Below, one piece after another: positions 5,478 through 57,163 of a DNA stretch of 64,000 nt; the first letter of the stretch is position 1, and every line of letters begins with the position of its first letter. Under the pieces are notes generated by a model, which did no database searches, was not told where the DNA came from, and saw nothing but the letters and a program-made list of their open reading frames with translations. The DNA lies in assembly GCF_964204645.1 (NCBI RefSeq), contig NC_134033.1:4302231-4366230 (forward strand), written 5' to 3'. The translations under genes and the position numbers were made by a program. This DNA comes from Tubulanus polymorphus (taxonomy: Eukaryota > Animalia > Nemertea).

Positions 5478-8400
5478 TCATTTTATTGGTTGTCGTTTTC
5501 TGCGTTTATTTCGAGCTCGTATGGATTTCATATCGATAGTTAGAATAGTGTAAAGAAGTGGGTTCAGAGTTGAGTTTATCGGCAAGAAAAGAACGGCCAG
5601 CCAAGCGGCAACCTGGTTCGGTATCTCGACCGAAAATACGGCGCAAGACTGAACGATTATCAACGGTAACCAGCAAAATAAATTACAAAGATTGATGACT
5701 AAACTGCGTCGAGCTAGAACGAGTTCTGTAGGATCAGCTCTACCCGAACCGGACCTGCTTCCGGATACATACTTGTACATCTGCGCGTACGACATCATTA
5801 TCAGAGTGAGAATGATCGCGTTTAATACAGCAAATATAGCGAACGAATATTGCCAACCATTGACATCTATAGATATTAGATTCATAGGTAAACAGATACC
5901 CGTACTACCGTAAAAATTATCACCGAAATAAGACGACCGAGACAGCGGCAGAAAGGCGATTAAACTCAGAAATATCCAGCATAAACAAGACAGAATCATA
6001 ATGATATTTGAGGATAAAACCGGGTTACCGGAAAATGGGTCGATTATATTCGAATATCTGAAACGCGTGAGGAGAAGGAGAAATGTTAAAGAGCCTTCGC
6101 AAGATATCGTCACCACAATTCCGGCGACACCGCATAATGAACTACGAGTCCAAGTTTCAGAATTCAGAAAATAAACACCTTTATAAACGTGATCAGTTGC
6201 AGCGATCAGAAACAGATAAACAGACATCAGGAAATCACAAAGCGCGGTATTAATGATGAGGATATCCGACGATTTATTTTGCGTTTCTGACGAAACTCGA
6301 ATCGACCTTAATCGAAATAAGATAACGGTAATATTGGAAGTGCAAGTAAAACAAGCGATGATCCAGATAACAGCTGTGAGGACAGTGTTCTCAATGAGGT
6401 CTGAACACGATGAGAATTGATCAGGATCCGGGAGACACCGTTCAATATTCGGCGCCATACAACAGAATTTATACGCGTCCGAAGCGAGAAAATATAAAGA
6501 CGTCAGATTATCGAAGATATTATTTTCCGTAGAAATGATCCGAGAATTGTTGGTGAAATCTAGAACTCCCAGTGAACTCAACCCAGTAAACGCGTATCTG
6601 GATATTGATTCGATTACGTTACTGCTGATATTCAAATATTTCAGCGCTGGTAAACCTCGGAATACGTTACGAGTAAGAAAAGAAATTGAGAGTTCACGGA
6701 GATCCATAGCCGGAAGTGACGTCAAACCATTGAAGCTTCCATCGTTCAAATATCTCAGCGGATTTCCGGCGAGTAAAAGTTGTTTCAAACTGTTTAAACC
6801 AGTGAATGTATTAGCATGTAGTGATACTAGGCGATTATACGACAGATCTAATGTATTTAGATTGCGTAGATTAGAAAACGCGTTGGAGACAATGTCAGAT
6901 AAATCATTACGGGAAATATTGAGTAAGAAAAGATACAGAAAAGAGGAAAATGTCGATTCATTGAATCTAACTCGGTTATTCGATAAAATCAAAACTCGAG
7001 TCGACGCGGCAAAAATTCCAGAAATGTCCGATAAAAAAGTATTTTCACAATCGATGAAACGACCTTGACATTTACAATAGTTAGGACACGTGACGTCGCA
7101 GTAAGCCTCGTCATCCGAGTTACGTTTGCAATTAACGACACCATCGCAAACTTCCGACTGAGGAATACATCGATGTTCGTCAGCGCATTTAAACATTCCC
7201 GGACACGAAAACGTTTCGCAATTGAATTCATCTTCTGAATTAGGACAATCTGATCGACCATCGCACACGTGTCTAATCGGTATACAGTAAGACGATGGAC
7301 ATTTCACTGTACCAGCTGGACATTTAAACTCATTACAATTCAGTAAATGTTCGAGTCTTCTACAAACAGGAAAATCTGTCGGCATTGTTTCTAAAACACA
7401 TCTTTCTCTTCTCGCGTAACAATGAGGAGAATCGAATGAACATCTTTGTTTATCCGATTCGTTACAGAGTGAAGTGAAATTGGTCGTGCAGTAGTTCTCT
7501 GTAGTGCAGTGAATTCGTGGTTTGATTGTTATATCGGTCGTTACTATTTCATCTTCTTCGAGGTCCCCGCCACAATCTACAACACCATCCCGATACAACA
7601 GAGAACTGATACATTCATCATTTACGCACAAAAACCCATTACATTCGTCCGAAGAGCAGCCGATCTCATCGGATTTATCTTGACAATCAACCAGTCCATC
7701 ACATCGTTTATATTTAACGACACATTGTCCGTCGTTACACTTAAATTGATCAGAGGAACATGAAATATGATAGCACGAGTTCTCATCCGAGCTATCGACG
7801 CAATCTCTCATAAAGTTACAGAAACCGCTAATCGATATAACCTGTCCATCGTTACAGCGGAACTGACTGTGTAAATTGATATCTGTACAATCGAGTTCAT
7901 CTTCACCGTGTTGACAGTCGTTTCTGGTATCGCATACGCGATGGTCGCTGATACATCTTTGATCGTTACATTCAAACTGCCACGATTTACAACCGCTTAT
8001 AGAAGCCAACTCTTCATCAGTTACATCATAGGAACATAGCACGGCATGAGCTTCATCTGTGACATTGTCGAAGGCAGTCACTGACCATTTCACTGTTTGA
8101 AAATATGTTATCCAATCTCTAATTACAACTGGTTTTATTCCCACAATTCTTCCGCTTGTATGATTAGTCAGTATAGCGCCATATTGATGCTGATAGTGGA
8201 AAACATTTATCAAATACTGTATTTCAATACTAGATTTTATTATACCTATGTCTCCGCCGATTGTAAGACACATTTCTCTAGCTGTTTGGATTGTTAAACT
8301 TTCAGTATGGAGCGTTTGCCAGGCTGTAAGTATCTGATAGCAATGCGCTTCTATATGAATCCATCCTCTTAGACACGTGGAGTTAAATCGTTCAATGTTT

Positions 8401-11400
8401 TCCCGCTTTATTCCAATTGTATCGTTTTGTGAAGATGCATTAAAATCGTTTCTTTCTGTTTCACAAATGAATGTCGTGTGCGTCTCCTCGATTTGACACG
8501 GGAATCGAACCCAGTTCGCTGATCCTCGTGGATTATTCAGTATCATCGCCGTACACGGCATATTGACGTCATTTATCGGTTGTTTTCTTAGCGGAGATAT
8601 CAATCCCCGAATAACTTCTGGTATCGTTTCATTAACAGCAGCAGGTTTAAACCATTCTGCGTAACTGAACGGTTTACCGTCAGACCACGAGTAATAACCA
8701 CTGGACTCCTTTAAAAACAAACAAACAAATATTTGTTATACGTTCATTGCAGAAAACCCTTTTTGGATTATTTTCTGTGTTCTAATCATTTCGGGAATAA
8801 TTTAATATCTTGACACATGACAAGAATATAAATCGTAATCATCGAAGTTCTATTAGATGATTAATATTTGATATGAATATTACCTGCCATTTCAATCCAA
8901 TCATCACAATAAGCGCCGCCTGTGAATATGCCTCATGAAGCAGTTTTGTAGCGAACAGCATTTTAACGGCCATCATTTCACGTTGAGAGTTGATACTGAG
9001 GAGATGTCCTCCATATTTCTGTTGACAGTAAATTTCAGCGTTCTCCCAATTCAGAAGTTCGTGTTTGATGTATCTAATACACGAAACGCCTGAATCTAGA
9101 AAATCTGATCGGCAGCCATTGATTCGGTGTTTCAGTAAAGGCGATTGTTTGGAAAATAAATTGTTCCGATCATCAAATATTTTGATAATTTGTGTTAGTA
9201 ATATTGATCCCCTTGTGCGGGTACCAACAGATTCGGAGCATGATGTTTGTCCGATAAATTTAAACAGGAATCTGATGTAATGATTTATATTTTTGTCAGT
9301 AGGAAAAGAGAAACTAAAGAATATAGTTTTCGGGGTTGATAATCCAGGGAAGTTCGGTGACTGCACGAGTCCACAATGATCAGCGTTCCTTGAAATTCCA
9401 CCCATAAACCGTGGAGCCGGTTGACTTGGTTTTAATTTCTGACATTTACGTCGTAATACAATCATTAGTGGTGAACTCCAGAATTTATATTTAGTGCTTA
9501 ACAATTTCACATGGTTTAATACGAGACTGGTGTTTAACACTTGACTATCGAGACTTATCACTGAACAGGGATTCATAGCTGTACGATGACATCTGTCAAT
9601 TTGATATTCGTGTTCTGATAATACATCAATATTTCCAATCGGTAGGCGTCGATTTCCAGGTGTAATCACGAGACAATATGACGTCATTGTGATTTGTCGT
9701 TCTCCTTCCTGTAGAACATACCCGTCACAATCAGTTGGAACTAATTTTAGTCTACCAGATCCCAGTAGATCAAGCCAGTTGTAAGCGTATGCTACTACAG
9801 TAACCGGTCCACCTGATGTAATCAGGCTGACGACAGATCGACCGTAGTATGAACCAGGACAATACGGACCATAGCGTCTAGCTGAGAAATTACTACCATC
9901 AAATATATAAAAACCAGCTCGATCACAATTCTCCGATAAAATGTTCAGTTTTAATCTGCGTGATAAATGCTCATAGATGTCGATTTTCGAGCTGAGTGCA
10001 AATCTACTGATACGATATTGTAACTTCTGTTTCGGATAACGGGGGAACAGACTGTCATGGTACAGTGAATGAGTATTTCTAACCTACAATAGATGCAAAC
10101 ATAGAGTAAATCATCGGTATTCAATAAATGTTCATTCCGTATTTTCCTTTGCCCTTTAACCGACAAATATTGCAACTCTGCCGTTAAAGGGTCATTGACT
10201 TATGTACGATCAGGTTTGATTTCAAAAAATTACGATTCATGTGAATTCTACACATTATTTCATCGTTGATAAAACAATTTCAAATCAATACAATGAATTG
10301 AAGATATATTTTAATGCTGTTTTAACTCACTTTTTTATCTTCCACTTTGACGTCTGTTTCCTTCAATGATTCTATTTTGTATTCGATCGATGTTGAATTC
10401 CTCAACGATTTTTCGGAAAGATTCTCTGATAACAGTAAACACAATATCACGAGAAATCCGTCAGATTTTACGCCTAACGATTCCAGGTAGTTTTCGCCGA
10501 GTAAAATATTAGTTCCGACAACCGTTAAACCTTCCAGTTTATAAACACCGATGACGTCACCGGAAGTGACGAGATCACGTGACCAGTTGAAGACGACGTA
10601 CTGCAGTATTTCAGCTGTGATAGACCAGCAGTATAAGCGTTTAGACCGAGTTATTACGTGCGGCCTATCACCAGGAATGAGCACTCCGGATTTGTTTTTG
10701 CAGATCGGAATCGATGGATTAGAAATATTCCAATCTGATATCCTATACATATTTACGGATAGTCTAGTTTTGAGAGTCAATCGGGCTGAAAAAGTGACGA
10801 TAGCTCTGTTAGTTTTAGTGTAAATAGAGATGGGCGGATGTCCGGTTTGTTCCCGTATATTCATTATAGGTTCACTTGTGTTCCATCCGTCATAAATTTG
10901 AACGGTCAAATTCAAACCTGGTTGTTTTATTCTGAAATCTGTTTCCTCAAAAGTCAAATTCATACCTAAACCCTCTGATATCCCGGACCACTCGAGCTGC
11001 CGGAAATTACATATTCCATACATGTCGATAGCAAATTTATTACCAGTTTCAAAAGTTTGCAATTGTTTTATTCGGTAGGACGAACAGTGGTGAACAGACT
11101 TCAGATGCTTTTCCTCCAAACGATAAAATACATAAACTCGACTTCCTTTCACAACATCATTTACATCACTCTTAAACATCAACGATAATGAATTACTGCG
11201 GTAAATATCTAACTGTTTTCCATCACCGCACAGCAAGTTATCAGAATCGCTGATGCGAAGATAGTTATCTCTACAGAATATAGACGGCTCGATGTCGTAG
11301 TAAACTTGGACGCGAAAGGTGCCCGGTAAAGAACTGTTGACGAACCAACGACATTCAACACCGCGCGTAAACGACGGATAATTCGGTGAAACGATGTAAC

Positions 11401-11548
11401 CGGACGTAGAATCGAGTGAAAACCACGTATTGTTACACCGTGAACTGACAGTTACAGACGGTTGATCGGTAGAGATCCGATCAGTCGTCTGAACCGACGA
11501 CAGTTTCATTAGTAGAATGAGTAATAACGTTAAGAGACTGCGCGTCAT
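5478..11548 (-). CDS. GRL101-like LDLa/LRR GPCR with N-terminal CUB-like and C-type lectin domains, copy B (intact, ~1882 aa, 3 exons)
   Basis: Exons 11548-10331, 10083-8884 and 8708-5478, all phase 0 with GT/AG, join into one open frame. Motifs: signal peptide MTRSLLTLLLILLMKLSS; CUB (GYIVSPNYPS..CRW); CTL split by intron 2 (MIGLKWQ|ESSGYYSWSDG..FICE); second CTL (CLRGW..CYQI); ~7 LDLa (CDxxxDCxxxSDE); LRRNT CPNYCKC; LRRs; hinge FCC..DQFSSCSDL; 7TM with CWLP and NPLLY. Confidence 0.92.
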
Positions 11549-11919
11549 GTTGACATTCTCCTCGATCAGTTTAACTCTAACCACAGCGAATAGATTTTAA
11601 TCCAATTAATATTGGGCGTTTCCGAGTGAATGAGCGAGAGAGAGAGAGCGGTAGAGAGGATGAGTCAGACTACACGGCGCTCATTAAAAATAAATTCGAT
11701 AACCTACGAAACCGAGTAATGATTAACGAGATTAAAAACCGTATTCGATATTCAGTGCCTAGTCATTTCCTTATTTATATATTTATACATACAATTTTAA
11801 AATGTTCTTCGTCCAGTGGTAAACCGACAACGCTACTGCGGCAAGCCAGGATTCAGTAATAATCCTCCAGGTGTCGCTAGTTGTACTGGGTTACCGCACT
11901 GCAAATTTATTTTTCATAA

Positions 11920-12000
11920 GAGACCCGCGCATGCGCAGTATTAAACACCACGACTATCAGACGATCCCAATTTTGATTGTTGATAGAAACTGGCGGCTTT
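11920..12000. promoter_or_regulatory. Conserved upstream block with NRF1-type palindrome GCGCATGCGC and YY1-like (A/C)TGGCGGC
   Basis: cgcgcatgcgc lies ~370-380 bp upstream of the ATG in copies A-D (~4707, ~11926, ~42639, ~50438). The conservation may simply reflect recent duplication. Confidence 0.3.
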
Positions 12001-12364: not shown

Positions 12365-13034
12365 TAGCCGCCATTTTGTTAGGATACTTTGTCCTGTATT
12401 GTTGGGTCAATTTATTCTCTTCTTTAGAATCCATTTGCGATGCATGTTTTATCATGTTTTATTGGTCCATTGATGGAATTTGACAGTTTTAACAACATTT
12501 AAACCGTTTGAATCTCTAGTTTTCAGTTATGCAAAACTCGTATCTCAAATTTGCAACAATGCGACATGAAAGCGATATGAAAATCGGTGGTCAGTTTTTG
12601 ACGCGCTCATAAAAATCCAGGGTGTTGAACTTCGATGTTCGTTATTTTCAGAAATAATTTTCTAAAAATTTCATATCAGGAACTGTGCGCATAAACGCCC
12701 CATTTCAAATGAGAATAACACCCATATACTGGAATACAGGCATAGAAAACAGCGCCGAAACTAAGAATGATAAGATGCGCTGCAGTTAAATGGCTATAGG
12801 ATGAAAACTAGCGAAGATATCTTGAGATTGTAAATTTCGTTTGTAAGGGGGCATTTATGCACACAGTTCCTGAAATGTTTGAATTTTTTAGGAAATCATT
12901 TCTGGAAAATAATACAGTTAAGTACCCTGGATTTTTATGCGCGCTTTAAAAAACTGACCGCCAATTTTCAAATTCCATCAATGGACCAAAGAAACGTGAT
13001 ACAGGACAAAAGTGCTCTAACAAAATGGCGGCTA
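12365..13034. mobile_element. Foldback/MITE-like element with long imperfect terminal inverted repeats
   Basis: Left arm (tagccgccattttgttag...tggtccattgatggaatttga...ggtcagttttt...cataaaaatccagggt...caggaactgtgcgcataaa) is mirrored by the right arm (tttatgcacacagttcctg...accctggatttttatg...aaaaactgacc...aaattccatcaatggacca...ctaacaaaatggcggcta). Single-arm remnants at ~5143-5398, ~43381-43625 and ~51181-51325. Confidence 0.75.
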
Positions 13035-13074
13035 TAGTAACTGTACGTTTTTTGAACCTTGTTATCACGAGTTC

Positions 13075-15050
13075 GTATCCCTTGTGAATGAGAAGTCGAG
13101 AGAAGCGGGAGGTCCTGGTACTGAAATAAATACCACAGACAAATTACTTATAAAATACGAATTGACATCTACTTGAAGACGACAACTAACAGCATTTCTA
13201 ACTGTTTAATGGATCTACAGTAAAAAAACATGTTTATCACAATATTCCTGTGTTTGAATTGACGATTAAGAGTTTATTAGATTGAGGGATTTTACCTGCA
13301 CACAAAGTCTGTATAGTTAGTCTCGGACTAGTCAGACTCGCAGTTGATATAAGTCGACTGTTCACTAATTTCTGTAGTCTAACAGCTATCCGATACCCGG
13401 TATTAGGAGTTGTAACCGTTACAACAGGTTATCAAAGCCAGATGGCTATAGTGCGCGTGGACCTGGTTACCACCGAGATCCCGTGTGAACTCGCGTATCA
13501 TAATCGTTAACACGTTTATAATTTTTGTTTTTAACTAGTTTAAGACTGTGCCTGTTCTCTCGTTTGTATATTTTTTTCCTTTTTATAGTAACATTTTGAC
13601 AGTTTGTAACATTCTCAACAGATTGAGTAATCATAATTAGTTCCCAGCCTGATTTTGGATAAAAGCCGTAACAAATTTCCTGTAAAATCAGTTCATCTTT
13701 GTAAGCCTGATGGTGCACGTCTCTCCGCTAAATAAATCGATATAGTCTGAAGAAAGGCCTTGCAGTAGGTCATTGCATGACAAAGGGACAGGACGACGAC
13801 TCTGCCTCGCTTTTGCCGCTTCAACCAGGGAACGCTGTTGACTCTGCCCGACTCGCTAATTTTGCCTCTGCCCGGTGACCCGCCTGGCTTTGCTTCTACC
13901 TTGACGACCCACCTGGCTTCTGCTTCAGCCCGGCCCCTTGCTTTGCTTCTGTCCGAGAACGAATACAGTCCTCCTCGCTCAATGGCTTCCTCACTCCCCA
14001 TCGACTGTCAGTGGAGTGAGCCCGAAACCCCGTGGTGTTGGACCGAGAACTCTCCCAACATTAGGAGTTAGACCAGTAATTGTGTGATGTGTAAGGACTC
14101 CTGCAGTTTCCTGTTTAGTCCTAGTGTTTTCTGATATCTTACGATAAACGACTTGATACTGAACGCTGACAGTACCCCGTCTTGAATCTACTACAGAACC
14201 CGAGTAAGCTGTCCAACTGACTTTTACACTGTTATCTGTCAGCGCAGACCTTGTTAATTGAGAAAACAACTTCAATTCTGAAAAAGAAATCGATGTTAAT
14301 ATCAGGTGAATCAAACAAAATAAAGGGTAAGGATCTTTTACTTTGGGTTTTTTTGACTTGATACATTTTGTATTCATATTGGTTACTATATTCAGGGAAT
14401 AGGGAGTGAGATTCTTAGGAATCTATGATTCAGTGTAATATATACCTGACTCGCACCATTTTCCGATGTAATTCTGTGAACAGCCAGATTCACAGATACC
14501 ACTCAAATAGTTACAACTTTCACTGTTGTAACATCTACATTCAATCATACATCCAAATGAGTTCGATCCCTTACTACAATCACAATCTCGCCTACCCCTG
14601 TTCTTGTGTTGAACGGTGACGTATTGTCCAACTAGAGGACCTGGGCTGCATGCTAATGTTTTATGTTTACCACAGAGGGGGGCCCTGGTAAGCACGTTTC
14701 TGGTTAGAAATAAACATATTCGGGTTATTTCCGACTCGAATTTCCAAATTGCGCGCACGTTTTTCTGAGAAAAATTAAGAAGCTTTGAAATATGACAGAT
14801 TACTCCATGAAAAGAGGAAATTAATGCACGAAATCAGGGAAGTTGAAGATTGCTTTGTGTGCAAAACAATTTTGTTCAAATTCTTTTGAAGAAGAAATAT
14901 GAAAATGAATTCATTGTTTTCGACAGGCGCACGGCCCCTAGAAATTTAAAGTTATCGACTGAAAATGTTGACACGTTGAAAAAGTTGATTCAAATTTTCC
15001 AATAACGTATTTTTTACAATGTTTTCATCCTTGGATACCACAGACACACA
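13075..15050 (-). pseudogene. Partial duplicate of the RPTP ectodomain exons (F-lectin exon 4, EGF exon 5, FN3 exon 6, start of exon 7)
   Basis: Colinear and highly similar to ~22912-24750. The FN3 exon is interrupted by a solo LTR, exons 4 and 5 are fused by a deletion at ~14585, and there are no signal, TM or PTP exons. Confidence 0.9.
13408..14060 (+). mobile_element. Solo LTR (TGTT...AACA-type termini, 5-bp TSD; BEL/Pao- or copia-like)
   Basis: TSD ttagg at 13403-13407 and 14061-14065. Termini (a)gttg...caaca; the twin copy at 51702 starts tgttg. Internal aataaa at ~13730. The empty site is visible in the intact gene at ~23186. Confidence 0.8.
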
Positions 15051-34325: not shown

Positions 34326-34327
34326 TT

Positions 34328-34522
34328 TAGAACACCGCTACCACAACCGACTAGAACACCGCTATCACAACTGACTAGAACACCGCTACCACAACTGGCT
34401 AGAACACCGCTACCACAACTGGCTAGAACACCGCTACCACAACCGACTAGAACACCGCTACCACAACCGACTAGAATACCTCTACCAGCAAAACTGACTA
34501 GAACACCGAGATCTGACTAGAA
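34328..34522. repeat. 24-bp minisatellite (ctagaacaccgctaccacaaccga), ~8 copies
   Basis: Direct tandem repeats; this is the source of the spurious (RTPLPQPT)n ORF. Confidence 0.9.
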
Positions 34523-34864
34523 CTGACTCACTCTGAACTTAAGACGGATGTATTACAGTGAAACTTTGGACTTAAACCAGTTAAAATAGTCTTAAGACCA
34601 CTTTGGGAGTTTGGTTATTGACAATTCTGTGATCATATCTGATGATAACTTTTTGGTTATTTTATACATCTTCAGCTCCAGCAAACGAGACATATCACAG
34701 ATGACTGCATCATCACTTCAGCATTAAAGACTCGAAGGGAGCTACATTCTGATATTCGATGTTAAATCGTGTCGCTAGGTGGCGGTTGGGAACGAAATAA
34801 ATTATATTGATTTCGATTCGTCTGTTCTATTGTATTCCTGATTAGGACTATGTATGTTGCAGCC

Positions 34865-35430
34865 TTTTTGGACGTCAAGGAACACTTAGGATTCGAACCC
34901 TCGCAAGCCCAACTCTCTTGGACGCCTAGGATGATTTAGACTTCAAACCCTTGCAAGCCTACCTCTCTTGTGAGGCTGGGGAAAACAGGAACTCTTGGAC
35001 GCTGATGATGATGTTGGATTGGAACCCTCGCAAGCCCACTTCTCTTGAACGCTGAAGATAATGTAGGATTCGAACCCTTGGACCTCTTGGACACTTGGGG
35101 AAAATGTAGGATTCGAACCCGTGCATTCCCACTTCTCTTGTACGCTGAGGATAAGATTCGAACCCTCGCAAAAGGCCGCTTCTCTTGGACGCTAAAGATA
35201 ATGTAGAATTCGTACCATTGCATGCCCAACTCTCTTGGACACTGAGGAAAATGTATGACTCGAACCCGTGCATTCCCTTATTTTTCTTATTCGCCGAGGA
35301 AAATGCAGGATTCAAACCCATTTCTCTAGGACGCTGAGAAAAAAAAACAGGAGGATTCGAACTTTTACGAGCCCATTTCTCATGGATACCAGGCTTAAGA
35401 TTTAAAACCTTACAGACTTCTTGGACGAAT
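34865..35430 (-). repeat. Degenerate ~55-bp tandem repeat carrying a Pol III B-box-like motif (GGTTCGAATCC on minus strand)
   Basis: About 10 units of ctcttggacgctgaggaaaatgtaggattcgaaccc..gca..ccc on the plus strand. Confidence 0.75.
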
Positions 35431-36040: not shown

Positions 36041-39000
36041 TCATTTTATTGGTTGTCGTTTTCTGCGTTTATTTCGAGCTCGTATGGATTTCATATCGAT
36101 AGTTAGAATAGTGTAAAGAAGCGGGTTCAAAGTGGGTATTATCGGCAAGAAAAGAACGGCCAGCCAAGCGGCCACCTGGTTCGGTATCTCGACCGAAAAT
36201 ACGGCACAAAACTGAACGATTATCAACGGTAACCAGCAAAATAAATTACACAAATTGATGACTAAACTGCGTCGAGCTAGAACGAGTTCTGTAGGATCGA
36301 CTCTACCCGAACCGGACCTGCTTCCGGATACATACTTGTACATCTGCGCGTACGACATCATTATCAGAGTGAGAATGATCGCGTTTAATACAGCGAATAT
36401 AGCGAACGAATATTGCCAACCATTGACATCTATAGATATTAGATTCATAGGTAAACAGATACCCGTACTACCGTAAAAATTATCACCGAAATAAGACGAC
36501 CGAGACAGCGGCAGAAAGGCGATTAAACTTAAAAATATCCAGCATAAACAAGACAGAATCATAATAATATTTGAGGATAAAACCGGGTTACCGGAAAATG
36601 GATCGATTATATTGGAATATCTGAAACGCGTGAGGAGAAGGAGAAATGTTAAAGAGCCTTCGCAAGATATCGTCACCACAATTCCGGCGACACCGCATAA
36701 TGAACTACGAGTCCAAGTTTCAGAATTCAGAAAATAAACACCTTTATAAACGTGATCAGTTGCAGCGATCAGAAACAGATAAACAGACATCAGCAAATCA
36801 CAAAGCGCGATATTAATGATGAGGATATCCGGCGATTTATTTTGTGTTTCTGACGAAACTCGAATCGACCTAAACCGAAATAAGATAACGGTTATATTGG
36901 AAACGAACGTAAAACAAACGATGATCCAGATAACAGCTGTGAGGACAGTGTTCTCAATGAGGTCTGAACACGATGAGAATTGATCTGGATCCGGGAGACA
37001 CCGGTCAATATTCGGCGCCATACAACAGAATTTATACGCGTCCGAAGCGAGAAAATATAAAGACGTCAGATTATCGAAGATATTATTTTCCGTAGAAATG
37101 ATCCGAGAATTGTTGGTGAAATCTAGAACTCCCAGTGAACTCAACCCAGTAAACGCGTATCTGGATATTGATTCGATTACGTTACTGCTGATATTCAAAT
37201 ATTTCAGCGCTGGTAAACCTCGGAATACGTTACGAGTAAGAAAAGAAATAGAGAGTTCACGGAGATCCATAACCGGAAGAGACGTCAAACCGTTGAAGCT
37301 TCCATCGTTCAAATATCTCAGCGGATTTCCAGCGAGTAAAAGTTGTTTCAAACTGTTTAAACCAGTGAATGTATCAGCATGTAGTGATACTAGGCGATTA
37401 TACGACAGATCTAATGTATTTAGATTGCGTAGATTAGAAAACGCGTTGGAGACAATGTCAGATAAATCATTACGGGAAATATTGAGTAAGAAAAGGTACA
37501 GAAAAGAGGAAAATGTCGATTCATTGAATCTAACTCGGTTATTCGATAAAATCAAAATTCGAGTCGACGCGGCAAAAATTCGAGAAATATCCGATAAAAA
37601 AGTATTTTCACAATCGATGAAACGACCTTGACATTTACAATAGTTAGGACACGTGACGTCGCAGTAAGCCTCGTCATCCGAGTTATGTTTACAATTAACG
37701 ACGCCATCGCAAACTTCCGACTGAGGAATACATCGATGTTCGTCAGCGCATTTAAACATTCCCGGACACGAAAACGTTTCGCAATTCAATTCATCTTCTG
37801 AATTGGGACAATCTGATCGACCATCGCACACGTGTCTAATCGGTATACAGTAAGACGATGGACATTTCACTGTACCAGCTGGACATTCAAACTCATTACA
37901 ATTCAGTAAATGTTCGAGTCTTCTACAAACAGGAAAACCTGTCGGCATTCTTTCTAAAATACATCTATCTCTTCTCGCGTAACAATGAGGAGAATCGAAT
38001 GAACATCTTTGTTTATCCGATTCGGTACAGAGTGTAGTGAAATTCGTCGTGCAGTAGTTCTCTGTAGTGCAATGAATGTGTGGTTTGATTGTTATATTGG
38101 TAGTTACTATTTCATCTTCTTCGAGGTCCCCGCCACAATCTACAACACCATCCCGATACAACAGAGAACTGATACATTCGCCATTTACGCACAAAAATCC
38201 GTTACATTCGTCCGAAGAGCAGCCGATCTCATCGGATTTATCTTGACAGTCAACCAGTCCATCACATCGTTTATATTTACCCACACATTGTCCGTCGTTA
38301 CACTTAAACTGATCAGAGGAACATGAAATATGATAGCACGAGTTCTCATCCGAGCCATCGACGCAATCTCTCATAAAGTCACAGAAACCGCTAATCGATA
38401 TAACCTGTCCATCGTTACAGCGGAACTGACTGTGTAAATTGATATCCGTACAATCGAGTTCATCTTCACCGTGTTGACAGTCGTGTCTAGTATCGCATAC
38501 GCGATGGTCGCTGATACATCTTCGATAGTTACATTCAAACTGCCACGATTTACAACCGCTTATAGAAGCTAACTCTTCACCAGTTACATTATAGGAACAT
38601 AGCACGGAATGCGCTTCATCTGTGACATTATCGAAGGTAGTCACTGACCATTTCACTGTTTGAAAATATGTTATCCAATCTCTAATTACAACTGGTTTTA
38701 TTGCCATAATTCTTCCGCTTGTATGATTAGTCAGTATAGCGCCATATTGATGCTGATAGTGGAAAACATTTTTTAAATGCTGAATTTCAATACTAGATGT
38801 TATTATACCTATGTCTCCGCCGATTGTAAGACACATTTCTCTGGCTGTTTGGATTGTTAAACTTTCAGTATAAAGCGTTTGCCAGGCTGTAAGTATTTGA
38901 TAGCAATGCGCTTCTATATGAATCCATCCTCTTAGACACGTGGAGTTAAATCGTTCAAAGTTGTTCCGCGTTATTTCAGTTGTTTCGTTTTGTGAAGATG

Positions 39001-42000
39001 CATTAAATACGTTTCTCTCTGTTTCACAAATGAATGTCGTATGTGTCTCCTCGATTTGACACGGGAATCGAACCCAGTTCGCCAATCCTCGTGGATTATT
39101 CAGTATCATCGCCGTACACGGCATATTGACGTCGTTTATCGGTTGTTTTCGTAGCAGAGATATCAATCCTCGAATAACTTTTGGTATCGTTTCATTAACA
39201 GCAGCAGGTTTAAACCATTCTGCGTAACTGAACAGCTTCCCATCAGACCACGAGTAATAACCACTGGACTCCTTTAAAAATAAAAAAATACACACTTGTA
39301 ATACAATCATTGAAGAAAACTCTTTTTGGATTATTTTCTGTGTTCTAATCATTTTTGGAATAACTTCTTATCTTGTCACATGACAAGAACATGAATCATA
39401 ATCATCAAAGCTCAATTAGATGATTGATATTTGATATGTATTTTACCTGCCATTTCAATCCAATCATCACAATAAGCGCCGCCTGTGAATATGCCACATG
39501 AAGTAGTTCTGTAGCGAACAGCTTTTTTACGGCCATCATTTCACGTTGAGAGTTGATACTGAGAAGATGTCCTCCATATTTCTGTTGACAGTAGATTTCA
39601 GCGTTCTCCCAATTCAGACGTTCATGTTTAATGTATCTGATACACGAAACGCCTGAATCTATGAAATCTGATCGGCAGCCATTGATTCGGTGTTTCAGTA
39701 AAGGCGATTGTTCTAAAGTGTATTGAATTCGAAATATTGGCATGTACATGGATAACTCAAAATACAAGTCATACCCGAGTAGACTGTACAATACAAGTCC
39801 TGCTACTGCGTTATTCGCACATATTGTTGTTATATGACGGGTTTCTGTAAAGGTGGAAAATAAATTGTTCGGTTCATCAAATAATTTGATAATTTGTGTT
39901 AGTACAATTGATCCCCTTGTGCGGGTACCAACAGATTCGGAGCATGATGTTTGTCCGATAAATTTAAACAGGAATCTGATGTAACGATTTATATTTTTGT
40001 CAGTAGGAAAAGAAAAACTAAAGAATATAGTTGAGGAGGTTGATAATCCAGGGAAGTCCGGTGACTGCACGAGTCCACAATCTACAGTGTTCCTTGAAAT
40101 TCCACCCATAAACCGTGGAGCCGGTTGACTTGGTTTTAGTTTCTGACATTTACGTCGTAATACAATCATTAGTGCTGACCTCCAGAATTCATATTTAGTG
40201 CGTAATAATTTCACATGGTTTAATACGAGACTGGTGTTTAACACGTGACTATCGAAACTTATCGCTGAACAGGGATTCATAGCTCCACGATAACATCTGT
40301 CAATTTGATATTCGTGTTCTGATAATACATCAATGCTTTCTATCGGTAGGCGTCGATTTCCAGGTGTAATCACGAGACAGTATGACGTCATTGTGACCTG
40401 ACGTTCTCCTTCCTGCAGAACATGACCGTCACAGTCAGTCGGAACTAATTTTAGTCTACCAGTTACTAGTTTATCGTGCCAGTTGTAAGCGTACGCTACT
40501 ACAGTAACCGGTCCACCTGATGTAATCAGACTGACGACAGATCGACCGTAGTTTCCCAAACCACCAGCAGGACAATACGGACCATAGCGTCTAGCTGTGA
40601 AATTACTACCATCAAATATATAAAAACCAGCTCTCTCACATTTCTCTGATAAAACTGTTAATTCCTGAGTTCCTAATACAGACTCATAGATGTCGATTTT
40701 CGAGCTGAGTGCAAATCTACTGATACGATATTGTAACTTCCGTTTCGGATAACGGGGGAACAGACTGGTAAGTTGCACTGAATGAGTATTTGCAACCTAC
40801 AATAGATGTAAACATAGAGTAAATCATCGGTATTCAATAAATATTCATTCCGTATTTTCCTTTGCCCTTTAACCGAAAATATTGCGACTCTGTCGTTAAA
40901 GGGTCAATGACTTATGTTCGACCAGGTTTGATTTAAAAAAATTACGATTCATGTGAATTTTACACATTGTTTCATCGTTGTTAAACAATTTAAATACAAT
41001 ACAATAAATTGACGATGTATTTTCATGCTGTTTTAACTCACTTTTTTATCTTCCACTTTGACGTCTGTTTCCCTCAATGATTCTATTTTGTATTCGATCG
41101 ATGTTGAATTCCTCAACGATTTTCCGAAAAGATTCTCTGACAACAGTAAACACAATATCACGAGAAATCCGTCAGATTTTACGCCTAACGATTCCAGGAA
41201 GTTTTCGCCGAGTAAAATATCAGTTCCGACAACCGTTAAACCTTCCAGTTTATAAACACCGATGACGTCACCGGAAGTGACGAGATCACGTGACCAGTTG
41301 AAGACGACGTACTGCAGTATTTCAGCTGTGATAGACCAGCAGTATAAGCGTTTAGACTGAGTTATTACGTGCGGCCTATCACCAGGAATGAGCACTCCGG
41401 ATTTGATTTTACAGATCGGAATCGATGGATTCGAAATATTCCAATCTGATATCCTATACAGTTTTACAAATAGATTAGTTTTGAGATATAATCCAGCCCG
41501 TTTCATTGAAAAAGTGATGATAGCTCTGTTAGTTTTCGTGTAAATAGAGATGGGCGGATGTCCGGTTTGTTCCCGTATATTCATTATAGGTTCACTTGTG
41601 TTCCATCCGTCATAAATTTGAACGGTCAAATTTAAACCTGCTTGTTCTAATCTAAAATCTATTTTCTCAAAAGTCAGATTCATACCGAAACCCTCTGGTA
41701 TCCCGGACCACTCGAGCTGCAGGAAATTACATATTCCATACATCTGGATGATAGTAAATTTATAACCAGTTTCAAAAGTTTGCAATTGTTTTAGTTGGTT
41801 GGACGAACAGTGGTGAACAGTTTTCAGATGTTTTTCCTCCAAACGGTAAAATACATAAACTCGACTTCCTTTCACAACATCATTTACATCACTCTTAAAC
41901 ATCAACGATAATGAATTACTGCGGTAAATATCTAATTATTTTCCAGCACCGCACAGTAAGTTATCAGAATCGCTGATTTGAAGATAGTTATCTCTACAGA

Positions 42001-42271
42001 ATATAGACGGCTCGATGTCGTAGTAAACTTGGACGCGAAAGGTACCAGGTAAAGAGCTGTTGACGAACCAACGACACTCAACACCGCGTGTAAACGACGG
42101 ATAGTTCGGTGAAACGATGTAACCGGACGTAGAATCGAGTGAAAACCACGTATTGTTACACCGTGAACTGACAGTTACAGACGGTTGATCGGTAGAGATC
42201 CGATCAGTCGTCTGAACCGACGACAGTTTCATTAGTAGAATGAGTAATAACGTTAAGAGACTGCGCGTCAT
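36041..42271 (-). pseudogene. GRL101-like GPCR, copy C (single premature stop, otherwise open)
   Basis: Exons 42271-41042, 40796-39447 and 39271-36041. CAA>TAA at 41936-41938 (GAGK* where paralogs have GAGKQLD). TM7 reads LPIIPTLNP instead of LPINSTLNP. Confidence 0.85.
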
Positions 42272-43054
42272 GTTGACATTCTCCTCGATCAGTTTAACTC
42301 TAACTACAGCGAATAGATTTTAATCCAATTAATGTTGGACGTTTCCGAGTGAGTGAGAGAGAGAGGAAGAGAGGATGAGTCGACTACACGGCGCTCACTA
42401 AAAATTAAATTCGATAATCTACGAAACCGAGTAATGATTAACGAGATTAAAAATCTTATTCGATATTCATTGCCTAGTCAGTTCTATATCTATATATCTA
42501 CATACAATTTTAAAATGTCCTTCGTCCAGTGGTAAGCCGACAACGCTACTGCGGCAAGCGAGGATTCAGAGATAATCCTCCAGGTGTCGCTAGTGGCACT
42601 GGGTTACCGCACTGCAAATTTATTTTTCACAAGAGACCCGCGCATGCGCAGCAATAAACACCACGACTATTTTATGATCCCAATTTTGATCGTCGATAGA
42701 AAATGGCGGCTTTTTTGATAGTATTTATTCTTTCTAAGGGCATAAGATTCACACTAAGGTCCAAAGGGTCAGAGTTAGGTTAGGGTTAGAGTAGGCTTAG
42801 GTTTAGGATTAGCGTTTTAACGGGAAAAATGATAGGTAAAAATGTAATAAATGTAAGTATAGTTAAAAGTTGCTTAGCCTTCACTCGAGCTTGTGTGTTC
42901 GAATCCAATTTTCAAAATATCAATTTCCAATTTTCCAAGAGGATGAAACATACTGAAAAACTGATAAAGATAATAATTATCTAAGAAATGTTTTATTATG
43001 TTAATGTGATGATATCTTAACTGCCGAAAAGTGAACTATCTGCAATAAACGACT

Positions 43055-43322
43055 TTACACTTGCTCATTCTTACCAGTAAGATCTGGGCGTATTGTAGAT
43101 TCGTAATCATCTTTGAAATAAAGAACAACGCCACCGCCCTTTACATCATTCGAGCGGCTTTTGGAAATACTATTGTAGCCAGGTAGTTTATAAAGATTAT
43201 TGTTATGGGCATTATTATTACTCCAAGTCTCAGTAAGTCCTTTGATAGAAAAATCGGATTTCATACAATTGATATAGACAGTGAAAGAATCAAAATTTTT
43301 GTTGCAACTTCGAATATTAAAA
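43055..43322 (-). mobile_element. CR1/L2-type LINE fragment (APE endonuclease N-terminus)
   Basis: Translation FNIRSCNKNFDSF..DFSIKGLTETWS..LPGYNSISKSRS..KGGGVVLYFK matches the pattern of non-LTR APE domains. Confidence 0.8.
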
Positions 43323-43948: not shown

Positions 43949-46900
43949 TCATTTTATTGGTTGTCGTTTATTGCGTTTATTTCGAGCTCGTATGGATTTC
44001 ATATCGATAGTTAGAATAGTGTAAAGAAGCGGGTTCAGAGTTGAGTTAATCGGCAAGAAAAGAACGGCCAGCCAAGCGGCCACCTGGTTCGGTATCTCGA
44101 CCGAAAATACGGCGCAAAACTGAACGATTATTAACGGTAACCAGCAAAATAAATTACACAAATTGATGACTAAACTGCGTCGAGCTAGAACGAGTTCTGT
44201 AGGATCGACTCTACCCGAACCGGACCTGCTTCCGGATACATACTTGTACATCTGCGCGTACGACATCATTATCAGAGTGAGAATGATCGCGTTTAATACA
44301 GCGAATATAGCGAACGAATATTGCCAACCATTGACATCTATAGATATTAAATTCATAGGTAAACAGATACCCGTACTACCGTAAAAATTATCACCGAAAT
44401 AAGACGACCGAGACAGCGGCAGAAAGGCGATTAAACTCAGAAATATCCAGCATAAACAAGACAGAATCATAATGATACTTGAGGATAAAACCGGGTTACC
44501 GGAAAATGGGTCGATTATATTGGAATATCTGAAACGCGTGAGGAGAAGGAGAAATGTTAAAGAGCCTTCGCAAGATATCGTCACAACAATTCCGGCAACA
44601 CCGCATAATGAACTACGAGTCCAAGTTTCAGAATTCAGAAAATAAACACCTTTATAAACGTGATCAGTTGCAGCGATCAGAAACAGATAAACAGACATCA
44701 GGAAATCACAAAGCGCGATATTAATGATGAGGATATCCGACGATCTATTTTGCGTTTCTGACGAAACTCGAATCGACCTAAAACGAAATAAAATAACGGT
44801 AATATTGGAAGTGCAAGTAAAACAAGCGATGATCCAGATAACAGCTCTGAGGACAGTGTTCTCAATGAGGTCTGAACACGATGAGAATTGATCAGGATCC
44901 GGGAGACACCGGTCAATATTCGGCGCCAGACAACAGAATTTATACGCGTCCGAAGCGAGAAAATATAAAGACGTCAGATTATCGAAGATATTATTTTCCG
45001 TAGAAATGATCCGAGAATTGTTAGTGAAATCTAGAACTCCCAGTGACCTCAACCCAGCAAACGCGTATCTGGATATTGATTCGATTACGTTACTGCTGAT
45101 ATTCAAATATTTCAGCGCTGGTAAACCTCGGAATACGTTACGAGTAAGAATCGATATAGAGAGTTCACGGAGATCCATAACCGGAAGTGACGTCAAACCG
45201 TTGAAGCTTCCGTCGTTCAAATATCTCAGCGGATTTCCAGCGAGTAAAAGTTGTTTCAAACTGTTTAAACCGGTGAATGTATCAGTATCTAGTGATACTA
45301 GGCGATTATACGACAGATCTAATGTATTTAGATTGCGTAGATTAGAAAACGCGTTGGAGACAATGTCAGATAAATCATTACGGGAAATATTGAGCAAGAA
45401 AAGGTACAGAAAAGAGGAAAATGTCGATTCATTGAATCTAACTCGGTTATTCGATAAAATCAAAACTCGAGTCGAAGCGGCAAAAATTCGAGAAATATCC
45501 GATAAAAAAGTATTTTCACAATCGATGAAACGACCTTGACATTTACAATAGTTAGGACACGTGACGTCGCAGTAAGCCTCGTCATCCGAGTTATGTTTAC
45601 AATTAACGACGCCATCGCAAACTTCCGACTGAGGAATACATCGATGTTCGTCAGTGCATTTAAACATTCCCGGACACGAAAACGTTTCGCAATTGAATTC
45701 ATCTTCTGAATTAGGACAATCTGATCGACCATCGCACACGTGTCTAATCGGTATACAGTAAGACGATGGACATTTCACTGTACCAGCCGGACATTCAAAC
45801 TCATTACAATTCAGTAAATGTTCGAGTCTTCTACAAACAGGAAAACCTGTCGGCATTCTTTCTAAAATACATCTATCTCTTCTCGCGTAACAATGAGGAG
45901 AATCGAATGAACATCTTTGTTTATCCGATTCGGTACAGAGTGAAGTGAAATTGGTCGTGCAGTAGTTCTCTGTAGTGCAGTGACTTTGTGGTTTGATTGT
46001 TATATCGGTCGTTACTATTTCATCTTCTTCGAGGTCCCCGCCACAATCTACAACACCATCCCGATACAACAGAGAACTGATACATTCACCATTTACGCAC
46101 AAAAACCCGTTACATTCGTCCGAAGAGCAGCCGATCTCATCGGATTTGTCTTGACAATCAACCAGTCCATCACATCGTTTATATTTAACGACACATTGTC
46201 CGTCGTTACACTTAAACTGATCAGAGGAACATGAAATATGATAGCACGAGTTCTCATCCGAGCTATCGACGCAATCTCTCATAAAGTTACAGAAACCGCT
46301 AATCGATATAACCTGTCCATCGTTACAGCGGAACTGACTGTGTAAATTGATATCCGTACAATCGAGTTCATCTTCGCCGTGTTGACAGTCGTTTCTGGTA
46401 TCGCATACGCGACGGTCGCTGATACATCTTTGATCGTTACATTCAAACTGCCACGATTTACAACCGTTTCTAGAAATTAACTCTTCAACAGTTACATCAT
46501 AGGAACATAGCACGGAATGAGCTTCATCTGTGACATTATCGAGGGCAGTCACTGACCATTTCACTGTTTGAAAATATGTTATCAAATCTCTAATTACAAC
46601 TGGTTTTATTGCCATAATTCTTCCGCTTGTATGATTAGTCAGTATAGCGCCATATTGATGCTGATAGTGGAAAACATTTATCAAATACTGAATTTCAATA
46701 TCAGATGTTATTATACTTATGTCTCCGCCGATTGTAAGACACATTTCTCTGGCTGTTTGGATTGTTAAACTTTCAGATTGGAGCGTTTGCCAGTCTGTAA
46801 GTATTTGATAGCAATGCGCTTCTATATGAATCCATCCTCTTAGACACGTGGAGTTTAATCGTTCAAAGTTGTTGAGTGTTATTTCAGTTGTATCGTTTTG

Positions 46901-49900
46901 TGAAGATGCATTAAAATCGATTCTTTCTGCTTCACAAATAAATGTTGTATGCGTTTGTATGATTTGACACGGGAATCGAACCCAGTTCGCTGATCCTCGT
47001 GGATTATTCAGTATCATCGCCGTACACGGCATATTGACGTCATTTATCGGTTGTTTTCTTAGCGGAGATATCAATCCTCGAATAACTTCTGGTATCGTTT
47101 CATTAACAGCAGCAGGTTTAAAACATTCTGCGTAACTGAACGGTTTCCCATCAGACCACGAGTAATAACCACTGGACTCCTTTAATTAAAAGCCAAACAC
47201 TTGTTATACATACATTGCAGTAAACTCTTTTTGTTCTAATCATTTATGAATAACTTGATCATTATCTTCACACATGTATTTTACCTGCCATTTCAATCCA
47301 ATCATCACAATAAGCGCCGCCTGTGAATATGCCTCTTGAAGCAGTTTTGTAGCAAACAGCTTTTTTACGGCCATCATTTCACGTTGAGAGTTGATACTGA
47401 GAAGATGTCCTCCATATTTCTGTTGACAGTAAATTTCAGCGTTCTCCCAATTCAGACGTTCATGTTTGATGTATCTAATACACGAAACACCTGAATCTAG
47501 AAAATCTGATCGGCAGCCATTGATTCGGTGTTTCAGTAAAGGCGATTGTTCCAAAGTGTATTGAATTCGAAATATTGGCATGTACATTGACAGCTCAAAA
47601 TACAAGTCATACCCGAGTAGACTGTACAATACAAGTCCTGCTACTGCGTTATTTTCACATATTGTTGTTGTATGACGGGTTTCTGTAAAGGTGGAAAATG
47701 AATTGTTCGGATCATCAAATAACTTGATAATTTGTGTTAGTAATATTGATCCCCTTGTGCGGGTACCAACAGATTCGGAGCATGATGTTTGTCCGATAAA
47801 TTTAAACAGGAATCTGATGTAATGATTTAATTTTTTGTCAGTAGGAAAAGAAAAACTAAAGAATATAGTTGAGGACGTTGATAATCCAGGGAAGTTCGGT
47901 GACTGCACGAGTCCACAATCTACAGCGTCCCAAGAAATTCCACCAAATGACCTTGGATACAGTTGACTTTGTTTTAATTTCTGACATTTACGTCGTAATA
48001 CAATCATTAGTGGTGAACTCCAGAATTCATATTTAGTTCGTAATGATTGCACATGGTTTAATACAAGACTGGTATTAAACACGTGACTATTGAGACTTAT
48101 CGTTAAACAGGGAGTCCTAGCTGTACGATAACATCTGTCAATTTGATATTCGTGTTCTGATAATACATCTATGTTTTCTATCGGTAGGCGTCGATTTTCA
48201 GGTGTAATCACGAGACAGTATGACGTCATCGTGATTCGACGTTCTCCTTCCTGTAGAACATACCCGTCACAATCAGTTGGAACTAATTTTAGTGTACCAG
48301 TTACTAGTTTATCATGCCAGTTGTAAGCGTATGCTACTACAGTAACCGGTCCACCTGATGTAATCAGGCTGACGACAGATCGACCGTAGTATGAACCAGG
48401 ACAATACGGACCATAGCGTCTAGCTGTAAAATTTCCACCATCAAATATATAAAAACCAGCTCGATCACAATTCTCTGATAAAACTGTTAGTTTTAATCCA
48501 TAACCTGATAATTCATACTCATGAATGTCAATTTTCGAGCTGAGTGCAAATCTACTGATACGATATTGTAACTTTCGTTTCGAATTACGGGGGAACAGAC
48601 TATAATATTGCACTGAATGATCATTTCTAACCTACAATAGATGAAAACAGAGTAAATCATCGGTTTTCAATTAATGTTCATACCTTATTTTCCTTTGCCA
48701 TTTAAACAAAAAATATGACTCATGTTCGATCTGATTCGATTGCAAAAATTACGTGAATCGTACTTTCATCGTTGATAAAACACTTTCAAATCAATACAAT
48801 AAATTGACGATTTATTTTCATGCTGTTTTAACTCACTTTTTTATCTTCCACTTTGACGTCTGTTTCCTTCAATGATTCTATTTTGTATTCGATCGATGTT
48901 GAATTCCTCAACGATTTTCCGAAAAGATTCTCTAATGACAATAAACACAATATCACGAGAAATCCGTCAGATTTTACGCCTAACGATTCCAGGTAGTTTT
49001 CGCCGAGTAAAATATCAGTTCCGACAACCGTTAAACCTTCCAGTTTATAAACACCGATGACGTCACCGGAAGTGACGAGATCACGTGACCAGTTGAAGAC
49101 GACGTACTGCAGTATTTCAGCTGTGATAGACCAGCAGTATAAGCGTTTAGACCGAGTTATCACGTGCGGCCTATCACCAGGAATGAGCACTCCGGATTTG
49201 TTTTTACAGATCGGAATCGATGGATTCGAAATATTCCAATCTGAAATTCTATACAGTTTTACAAATAGATTAGTTTTGAGAGTCACTCGGACCTGTTTCA
49301 TTGAAAAAGTGACGATAGCTCTGTTAGTTTTAGTGTAAATAGAGATGGGCGGATGTCCGGTTTGTTCCCGTATATTCATTATAGGTTCACTTGTGTTCCA
49401 TCCGTCATAAATTTGAACGGTCAAATCTAAACCTGCTTGTAACAATCGAAGATCTATTCTCTCAAAAGTCAGATTCATACCTAAACCCTCTGGTATCCCG
49501 GACCACTCGAGCTGCAGGAAACTACATAATATTCCATACATTTCGATGATAGCAAATTTATAACCAGTTTCAAAAGTTTGCAATTGTTTTAGTTGGTTGG
49601 ACGAACAGTGGTGAACAGTTTTCAGATGTTTTTCCTCCAAACGATAAAATACATAAACTCGACTTCCTTTCACAACATCATTTACATCACTCTTAAACAT
49701 CAACGATAATGAATTACTGCGGTAAATATCTAATTGTTTTCCAGCACCGCACAGTAAGTTATCAGAATCGCTGATGTGAAGATAGTTATCTCTACAGAAT
49801 ATCGACGGCTCGATGTCGTAGTAAACTTGGACGCGAAAGGTGCCCGGTAAAGAGCTGTTGACGAACCAACGACATTCAACGCCGCGCGTAAACGACGGAT

Positions 49901-50069
49901 AATTCGGTGAAACGATGTAACCGGACGTAGAATCGAGTGAAAACCACGTATTGTTACACCGTGAACTGACAGTTACAGACGGTTGATCGGTAGAGATCCG
50001 ATCAGTCGTCTGAACCGACGACAGTTTCATTAGTAGAATGAGTAATAACGTTAAGAGACTGCGCGTCAT
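43949..50069 (-). CDS. GRL101-like LDLa/LRR GPCR with CUB-like and C-type lectin domains, copy D (intact, ~1936 aa, 3 exons)
   Basis: Exons 50069-48837, 48631-47285 and 47179-43949, phase 0, one open frame. Same domain motifs as copy B. W>C in the CTL1 YAEW motif (~47124). Confidence 0.92.

Positions 50070-57131: not shown

Positions 57132-57163
<32 letters not shown>

Follow-up and report, generated by a model that had tools for sequence, protein, structure and literature searches.

A tandem family of GRL101-type receptors with clustered ectodomain variation on a conserved LDLa-LRR-7TM core in the nemertean Tubulanus polymorphus

Our comparison of gene structure, predicted fold and substitution pattern across a 64,000-nucleotide stretch of the Tubulanus polymorphus genome (the window) leads us to favour, with modest confidence, the reading that the giant receptors encoded there belong to a germline-encoded repertoire of recognition receptors of the GRL101 type (multi-LDLa LGRs), with loops kept different by selection. 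The first-pass annotation of this DNA had proposed a variable-ectodomain repertoire on a conserved LDLa-LRR-7TM core, and this part stands: purifying selection on the core is shown (omega 0.24 for LRR and 7TM and 0.09 for CUB1), and the variable patches recur in a second subfamily. We propose that the family evolves as genes duplicate in tandem, convert one another and die, and that conversion would hold uniform a scaffold of CUB1, domain 3, lectin 1 and the LDLa array. Ligand specificity would then lie in exposed loops of domains 2, 4, 5, 6 and lectin 2, with differences probably maintained by selection at few codons and by in-frame indels, and the ligand signal would pass through the LRR and hinge peptide to the 7TM, as is known for other LGRs. 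The alternation of variable and constant ectodomains and the recurrent loop changes in two subfamilies indicate the probable site of specificity, and domain swaps would be a direct route to the ligands and to the immune-versus-sensory question. Searches of the open-access literature turned up neither an account of this nemertean family nor one of selection acting on the ectodomains of GRL101 receptors.

Gene copies and the conserved core

Copies A-D are three-exon genes with two phase-0 GT-AG introns each (Table 1), and their products of ~1,935 aa run in the order six CUB-like domains, two C-type lectin domains, LDLa, LRR and a GRL101-type 7TM. The intron 1 junction of D agrees with a spliced paralog contig, found once in a sequencing run of unrecorded type and tissue, which shows that at least one paralog is spliced and hence expressed; none of the RNA-labelled runs searched for the window's stretch contains it. 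B and D had been taken as intact, and D is indeed complete, but B has a 141-nt in-frame deletion near 9150 that costs domain 6 47 residues. The breaks of copies A, C, F and H were read from the assembly sequence; they include a premature stop at codon 112 of C (41938-41936), three frameshifts in A (two of them in exon 1, the third in exon 3) and a frameshifting 11-nt deletion near 63150 in F; altogether five of the nine copies examined are broken and one further copy is deleted in frame. Assembly duplication is rejected because exons differ by 3-9% between copies, introns by more, and another sample's reads contain many copies. Read depth suggests roughly 270 copies in the genome.

Table 1. 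Coordinates of receptor copies, exons, domains and variable patches in the window
Feature	Position	Strand	Remarks
Copy A	1..4336	-	Pseudogene, extends past window start
Copy B	5478..11548	-	Frame open; exons 11548-10331, 10083-8884, 8708-5478
Copy C	36041..42271	-	Three exons as in D: 42271-41042, 40796-39447, 39271-36041
Copy D, whole gene	43949..50069	-	Only fully intact copy in window; about 1,936 aa
D exon 1	50069-48837	-	Signal, CUB1, CUB-like 2 and 3
D exon 2	48631-47285	-	CUB-like 4-6 and first half of lectin 1
D exon 3	47179-43949	-	Remainder of lectin 1, lectin 2, LDLa array, LRR, 7TM
Copy E	53624..55459	+	3' fragment (last LDLa, LRR, 7TM); third, diverged subfamily
Copy F	60045..64000	+	Diverged subfamily; exons 60045-61274, 61591-62937, from 63019; extends past window end
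D conserved core (LRR, hinge, 7TM)	43949..45559	-	Omega 0.24
Domain 2 variable patch, loop L3 position	49512..49562 (D coordinates)	-	Loop placed by sequence landmarks
Domain 2 variable patch, loop L5 position	49425..49463 (D coordinates)	-	
Domain 2 patch, loop L9 position	49275..49307	-	Variable in sequence and length; varies also in F subfamily
Domain 4, L3 region	48575..48631	-	Variable start of exon 2; strongest selection signal
Domain 4 length-variable patch, strand 5 / loop L5 region	48479..48523	-	Three lengths in A-D, two in F subfamily
Domain 4, loop L7 position	48383..48403	-	C has a 3-residue insertion
Domain 4, loop L9 position	48293..48322	-	Variable in both subfamilies; length-variable in F subfamily
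Variable segment between domains 5 and 6	47921..47971	-	May be linker
Second C-type-lectin-like domain	46466..46909	-	11-15% aa variable, both subfamilies; identity by sequence pattern, without its own Pfam hit

GRL101-type receptors are orphans. The copies here have the GRL101-like or type C2 LGR architecture, with a rhodopsin-class 7TM (Pfam 7tm_1 E 6e-18, spanning 2-260 of 260), an LRR (LRR_8 E 2e-25) followed by an LGR hinge (FCC...FSSCxDL) alignable with annotated GRL101s, and multiple LDLa repeats (five Pfam stretches at E<0.1, 123 bits, and further degenerate ones by eye); the hinge FSSCxDL, TM3 Arg, CWxP and NPxxY motifs are kept. In a 7TM tree whose deep nodes are unsupported the nemertean copies group together as a single clade with a long branch (100/100), and the nearest outside matches are annotated GRL101 proteins at 39% identity in the 7TM. 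Similar to Lymnaea GRL101 and type C2 LGRs they combine multiple LDLa, LRR, the FSSCxDL hinge and a rhodopsin-class 7TM, although those receptors are usually single-copy and without a CUB or lectin region (PMC8286064, PMC6267866). As GRL101 has been proposed to be an IGF receptor (PMC8286064) and LRR and LDLa are conserved inside subfamilies, insulin/IGF-like peptides might bind the constant LRR-LDLa part with the CUB region an incidental appendage; we hold this endocrine role to be very improbable, given that the IGF proposal concerns single-copy orthologs, that the nemertean clade is long-branched and not placed as a GRL101 ortholog, and that a family of hundreds whose distal domains vary would not be expected. 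The combination of CUB and C-type lectin with an LDLa-LRR-7TM core is not unique, because Branchiostoma CUB-LDLa-SRCR-CTL-LRR-7TM proteins (the P0029 cluster, annotated GRL101-like) share it. Unlike the nemertean receptors, however, these carry SRCR and a C-terminal kinase-like part, with 32% 7TM identity; the tree gives no support for joining them to the nemertean clade, and no large array was seen.

Distribution of variation across the ectodomain

Close paralogs differ at 11-21% of residues in domains 2, 4, 5 and 6 and lectin 2, against 2-7% in CUB1, domain 3, lectin 1, LDLa, LRR and 7TM. Mean differences among A-D are 1.6% (signal and CUB1), 16.6% (domain 2), 5.8% (domain 3), 17.3% (domain 4), 20.3% (domain 5), 10.7% (domain 6), about 4-7% (lectin 1), 11-15% (lectin 2), 4-6% (LDLa), 2-4% (LRR) and 3-4% (7TM), the LRR and 7TM being compared in B, C and D only because those of A fall beyond the window. 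The sequence patches quoted in the first-pass annotation were all found, each in the copy named, and its description of short variable patches with in-frame indels on a near-constant module is confirmed, since variable codons, far from being spread evenly, are strongly clustered in exons 1 and 2 (permutation p<0.0005). Near-constancy of the 7TM holds within a subfamily but not across subfamilies, where E, G and I are ~73% identical to D. The domain 4 L3 region has one more variant in the spliced contig. Variability of lectin 2, in exon 3, had been missed earlier.

The same alternation of constant and variable domains is present in a second subfamily, represented by F and three copies from outside the window and 55-60% identical to the first. 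Variable columns common to both number 55 where 34 are expected (p=0.008), and patches defined in one subfamily have a dN 3-4 times that of the rest when measured in the other. Pseudogene decay as the sole source of variation is rejected because the same loops also vary among the intact copies (D, G and I) and B, whose frame is open.

Searches and fold predictions, run exon by exon, support a CUB fold for domain 2 (ESM 0.95 to CUB clusters; VIA Z 9.6, rmsd about 3 over 102-109 residues; Foldseek tandem-CUB matches at E 5e-7 from a model of pLDDT only 55-65), for which no PDB match was found by sequence. Domain 4 scored 68% (E 6.5e-6) in hhalign against a weak profile of only two sequences, one that missed even the Pfam-confirmed CUB1, and exon 2 as a whole gave ESM 0.91 with an AF2 model of pLDDT 29.5 and no close relative among 50%-cluster representatives; domains 3, 5 and 6 are called CUB-like on sequence landmarks. 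A length-limited search for full-length models via the lectin region found none, which is no evidence of absence. Spermadhesins are top fold matches, and CUB domains take part in gamete binding. These could suggest allorecognition or gamete-recognition receptors whose loop variants pair with a polymorphic partner protein, but a fold match is no proof of function, no partner was found, and the variation lies among hundreds of paralogs and not among one locus's alleles, so that we give this reading very little weight.

Ca-binding CUBs bind ligand through their odd loops (PMC8051872), and a low-confidence mapping, based on the pLDDT 55-65 model for domain 2 and on landmarks for domain 4, would place the patches of both domains at these positions; patches thus map to predicted ligand loops too, and not to disordered linkers only. 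In the alignment the acidic Ca2+ ligands of domain 2 loops L5 and L9 are absent, the Glu and Asp positions being replaced; on this alignment domain 2 is not a canonical Ca-binding CUB, and it may use the same face.

Selection, gene conversion and drift

The proposal that the ectodomain is under diversifying selection fared less evenly. No domain among all those checked has omega above 1. Using our own implementation of the site models (F3x4, empirical Bayes) and not PAML or HyPhy, a joint M2a versus M1a test that allowed for multi-nucleotide changes and mixed topologies gave LRT 30 (p=3e-7), placing roughly 3% of codons in a class of omega 5.5 (5-8 overall), and a site test with regional dS classes on star trees gave p=2e-10; exon 3 gave no signal, and tests on the four copies alone were significant only without controls. 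Standard and several corrected tests are thus significant, but the signal is mostly indel-adjacent (masking out to 3 codons from an indel leaves p=0.025, out to 6 codons p=0.10) and is lost once site-rate variation is added (p=0.18-0.3). Positive selection on the ectodomain is therefore only suggestive.

Gene conversion is evident and mosaic ancestry is shown, with D-versus-F islands at pS 0-0.11 against a background of 0.6-0.9, informative sites clustered (p=1e-4), and upstream divergence of 1.4% for C-D against 7-10% for other pairs. Cross-validated omega averaged over the patches lies at 0.6-1.2 and in no case exceeds 1 significantly, dS climbs together with dN (rho 0.53), and dS by patches is 0.168 against 0.101 elsewhere (p=0.013). 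Because of this patch omega and raised synonymous divergence, part of the variation is accounted for by patches escaping conversion and by a loosening of constraint. One could go further and see a redundant tandem family with no selection for diversity, in which conversion homogenises the framework and tolerant loops drift, gain indels, stop pairing and escape conversion. The patch omega of about 1, the raised dS, the failure of site tests once rates vary and the numerous pseudogenes all speak for this, as does a patch dN near the divergence of introns, which is 7-22% pairwise between copies. However, the same whole-domain alternation appears in two subfamilies (though every CUB-like domain has surface loops), the joint test holds under multi-nucleotide, topology and regional-dS controls, and core omega stays low in a family expanded to hundreds of copies; we judge drift without selection unlikely, if a serious competitor to a repertoire maintained by selection.

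Birth-and-death arrays with gene conversion, in which the ectodomain varies and the signalling part stays constant, are familiar from FREPs, sea-urchin TLRs and SpTransformer, none of which is known to signal via a 7TM. The nemertean variation lies in CUB-like loops, and the comparison would be a working analogy, not membership. The term 'CDR-like' is likewise an analogy: the variants seen are separate germline genes, with no sign of somatic diversification and no cassette structure within the window.

Recognition role and the snail parallels

GRL101 expansions in spiralians have been taken as chemosensory in some snails and immune in others. In ampullariids (apple snails; PMC6573481), lineage-specific tandem expansions of 29-132 genes, exceeding 100 copies, are expressed in tentacle and palp, and the accessible text describes no CUB/lectin variable-loop design; Charonia and Acanthaster likewise show tentacle expression. 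One form of the repertoire reading, sharing in its probability, would accordingly place the same design in the head sensory epithelium for a prey, mate or settlement cue. This we think doubtful taken singly, the lectin and CUB ectodomain, the lectin receptor phosphatase interleaved with the array and the likeness to the Biomphalaria resistance locus (PMC12297450) all standing circumstantially against it.

The window holds both gene types together, GRL101-type receptors and interleaved lectin (galactose-binding/EGF) receptor phosphatases. In the Biomphalaria sudanica study (PMC12297450), a tandem GRL101-like cluster, SudRes2, with a C-type lectin, LDLa and LRR ectodomain, truncated and present/absent copies and a proposed recognition role, and EGF/galactose-binding receptor phosphatases mark two schistosome-resistance regions. 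Within the preferred repertoire reading we lean slightly towards the recognition of non-self (parasites or microbes) and away from chemosensing because of the lectin/CUB ectodomain, the turnover and this snail parallel. The stronger version, a germline immune repertoire of ~270 genes with CUB domains as antibody-V-like parts, direct 7TM signalling and clustering with lectin phosphatases like the snail resistance loci, we advance tentatively, as less likely than not; if true it would point to a recognition system common to spiralians. The nemertean array itself may bear on the snail GRL101 cluster linked to schistosome resistance. SudRes2 differs in having 12 genes where the nemertean has roughly 270, and the accessible text reports neither a CUB array nor loop-level variation or selection analysis, whereas the nemertean genes have six CUB-like domains and three giant exons.

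The receptor array and its copies

We found four copies of one gene in the window (A, B, C and D), all on the minus strand, together with E, a 3' fragment of a third subfamily, and F, a diverged plus-strand copy. Every gene is built of three large exons separated by two short phase 0, GT-AG introns; homology searches and structure predictions were run per exon. Pfam places a CUB domain in exon 1, exon 2 ends in a weak C-type lectin match, and exon 3 matches LDLa, LRR and 7tm_1. By this architecture the array receptors are GRL101-like type C2 LGRs. Large tandem GRL101 expansions and GRL101 clusters bearing lectin domains have already been published, and relatives with CUB and lectin domains occur in amphioxus; the GRL101-like Branchiostoma protein P0029 combines CUB, LDLa, SRCR, lectin, LRR, 7TM and a C-terminal kinase-like region. 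Neither the nemertean family nor diversification at the level of loops turned up in the open-access literature. The array is real, and its new element is a variable-loop design replicated in two subfamilies, A-D and F with its relatives G, H and I.

Copies B and D had been taken as intact, which holds for D (~1,936 aa) but not for B, whose open frame lacks 47 residues of domain 6. Copy C has a premature stop at codon 112, A three frameshifts, F one, and H a frameshifting 13-nt deletion in exon 3. Of the nine copies seen (A-I), three are intact and five broken, and the remaining one carries an in-frame deletion. P0057, named GRL101-like by NCBI and placed on OZ123234.1 of the Tubulanus polymorphus assembly GCA_964204645.2, comes from a locus 90% identical to F over 4.5 kb, flank and introns included, which assigns the window to this ribbon worm or a very close relative. 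Considering that the public gene calls for the intact G and I (P0036 and P0057) cover only 689 and 525 residues, the family seems to be under-annotated, with the CUB region missing from the protein sets searched.

Raw DNA reads from another sample (1,934 Mb), mapped to D at 86% identity, gave a depth of ~1,450 at CUB1 and part of the LDLa array, ~300 across the 7TM and ~120-140 across the variable domains, which at a genome size of 358 Mb (PMC8468679) convert to rough estimates of ~270, ~55 and 22-25 copies. At least one paralog is transcribed and spliced, since a contig from run X4 fuses exons 1 and 2 precisely at the predicted intron 1 junction and in frame; at the first patch of exon 2 this contig shows one further variant.

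Variable loops in two subfamilies

All sequence patches quoted for A-D in the first-pass annotation were found in the sequence, and variable codons are clustered (p<0.0005). We extended the second subfamily with three fetched F-type copies (G and H from L001, I from L002); it is 55-60% identical in protein to A-D and shows the same alternation of domains. In both, amino acid differences are 2-4% in the constant CUB1, 15-17% in the variable domain 2, 6-7% in the constant domain 3, 11-21% in the variable domains 4-6 (all CUB-like), 3-7% in the mostly constant lectin 1, 11-15% in the variable lectin 2, and 2-6% in the constant LDLa, LRR and 7TM. The variable ectodomain on a conserved core that had been described is thereby borne out, although the near-constant 7TM holds within subfamilies and not between them, as the read depths also show, E, G and I being 73% identical to D there. 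Moreover, 55 variable columns are common to both subfamilies against 34 expected by circular shifts (p=0.008), and in domains 2 and 4 the loops that vary in length in the first subfamily do so again in the second.

Domain 2 has no Pfam match but comes out as a CUB fold by language-model features (0.95), Foldseek matches and a VIA-align Z of 9.6, with a structural model of modest confidence. Alignment to an amphioxus CUB puts its three patches at the L3, L5 and L9 positions, and those of domain 4 at L3, strand 5/L5, L7 and L9. In Ca-binding CUBs the odd-numbered loops build the ligand site (PMC8051872); acidic Ca ligands are absent from domain 2, which may therefore use the corresponding face without Ca. 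Judged from sequence landmarks, the patches of domains 2 and 4 would lie at ligand-loop positions, and the one lying between domains 5 and 6 could belong to a linker.

Selection and gene conversion

Omega is 0.09 in CUB1, 0.24 in LRR plus 7TM and 0.4-0.9 in the variable domains, exceeding 1 in no domain. In A-D, M2a was preferred over M1a for exon 1 (p=0.004) and exon 2 (p=3e-5) and was no better for exon 3, and the advantage was gone once multi-nucleotide changes or rate variation were allowed. With both subfamilies together the signal stands under multi-nucleotide changes and regional dS classes, and a per-site topology mixture gives an LRT of 30 (p=3e-7; omega 5.5 at 3% of codons). It weakens to p=0.025 and 0.10 on masking codons up to 3 and up to 6 positions from an indel, a step that strips out alignment error and also the loops themselves, and to p=0.18-0.3 when site-rate variation is added as well. 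In a non-circular test, with patches defined in one subfamily and rates measured in the other, patch dN was 3-4x and dS 1.3-2.4x that of the rest (omega 0.6-1.2). The diversifying selection originally claimed thus finds support in the joint test but not under site-rate variation or in the patch rates, and positive selection acting on a small number of loop codons is plausible without being proven.

Gene conversion accounts for part of the pattern. Synonymous and nonsynonymous differences covary (pS-pN rho 0.53), and the informative sites fall in clusters (p=1e-4). Islands common to D and F have a pS of 0-0.11 against an otherwise saturated background of 0.6-0.9 and mark conversion between subfamilies on opposite strands. 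Over 800 nt upstream, C and D diverge by 1.4% and other pairs by 7-10%, suggesting a recent promoter conversion or crossover; the C and D coding parts are as divergent as any pair. Codons 1-55 are identical in A-D. The constant/variable contrast is thus in part the result of conversion that makes the frame uniform and spares the loops.

Possible function and neighbouring sequence

The most likely reading of the family is a recognition-receptor repertoire. In this model the variable CUB-like and lectin domains, carried distally on a long LDLa stalk, would differ in the ligands they bind, and a conserved unit of LRR, hinge peptide and 7TM would pass binding on to a G protein. Such a relay is known in other LGRs, and the hinge and 7TM motifs are intact here. 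The diversity would be of germline origin, through duplication, conversion, loop indels and loss. Data from apple snail, triton and starfish indicate sensory organs, but an immune role appears slightly more likely to us for this repertoire: a lectin/EGF/FN3 receptor phosphatase is located between B and C, and in Biomphalaria sudanica the two schistosome-resistance regions are marked by phosphatases of this kind and by a CTL-GRL101 cluster (PMC12297450).

The multi-exon phosphatase has the domain set of the Biomphalaria SudRes1 RPTPs, and its first PTP signature has Gly at the expected catalytic Cys position. Partial duplicates of its ectodomain exons adjoin B and D on their 5' sides, so that phosphatase pieces have been duplicated together with GPCR units; E starts directly at the end of one.

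Coordinates of array features and neighbouring sequence (window positions unless a locus is named)
Feature	Position	Strand	Remark
Copy D	43949-50069	minus	
Copy F	60045-64000	plus	runs off window end
F exon 3 islands	~63080-63140, ~63700-63980	plus	near-identical to A-D subfamily at synonymous sites
F exon 2 island	codons ~60-90	plus	as above
Upstream of C	42272-43065		
Upstream of D	50070-50864		
Receptor tyrosine phosphatase	~18500-27900	minus	EGF-like, galactose-binding (F-type-lectin-like), FN3, TM, two PTP
Phosphatase partial duplicates	12888-14947, 51179-53629		~92-94% identity
Frame like C-terminal part of Penelope-like reverse transcriptase	30484-30900	minus	by eye; no Pfam match
Tandem minisatellites	33250-35300		
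Simple repeat	56937-57299		
Copy H intron 1	L001 16743-17225		mostly swapped for unrelated sequence with AT microsatellite
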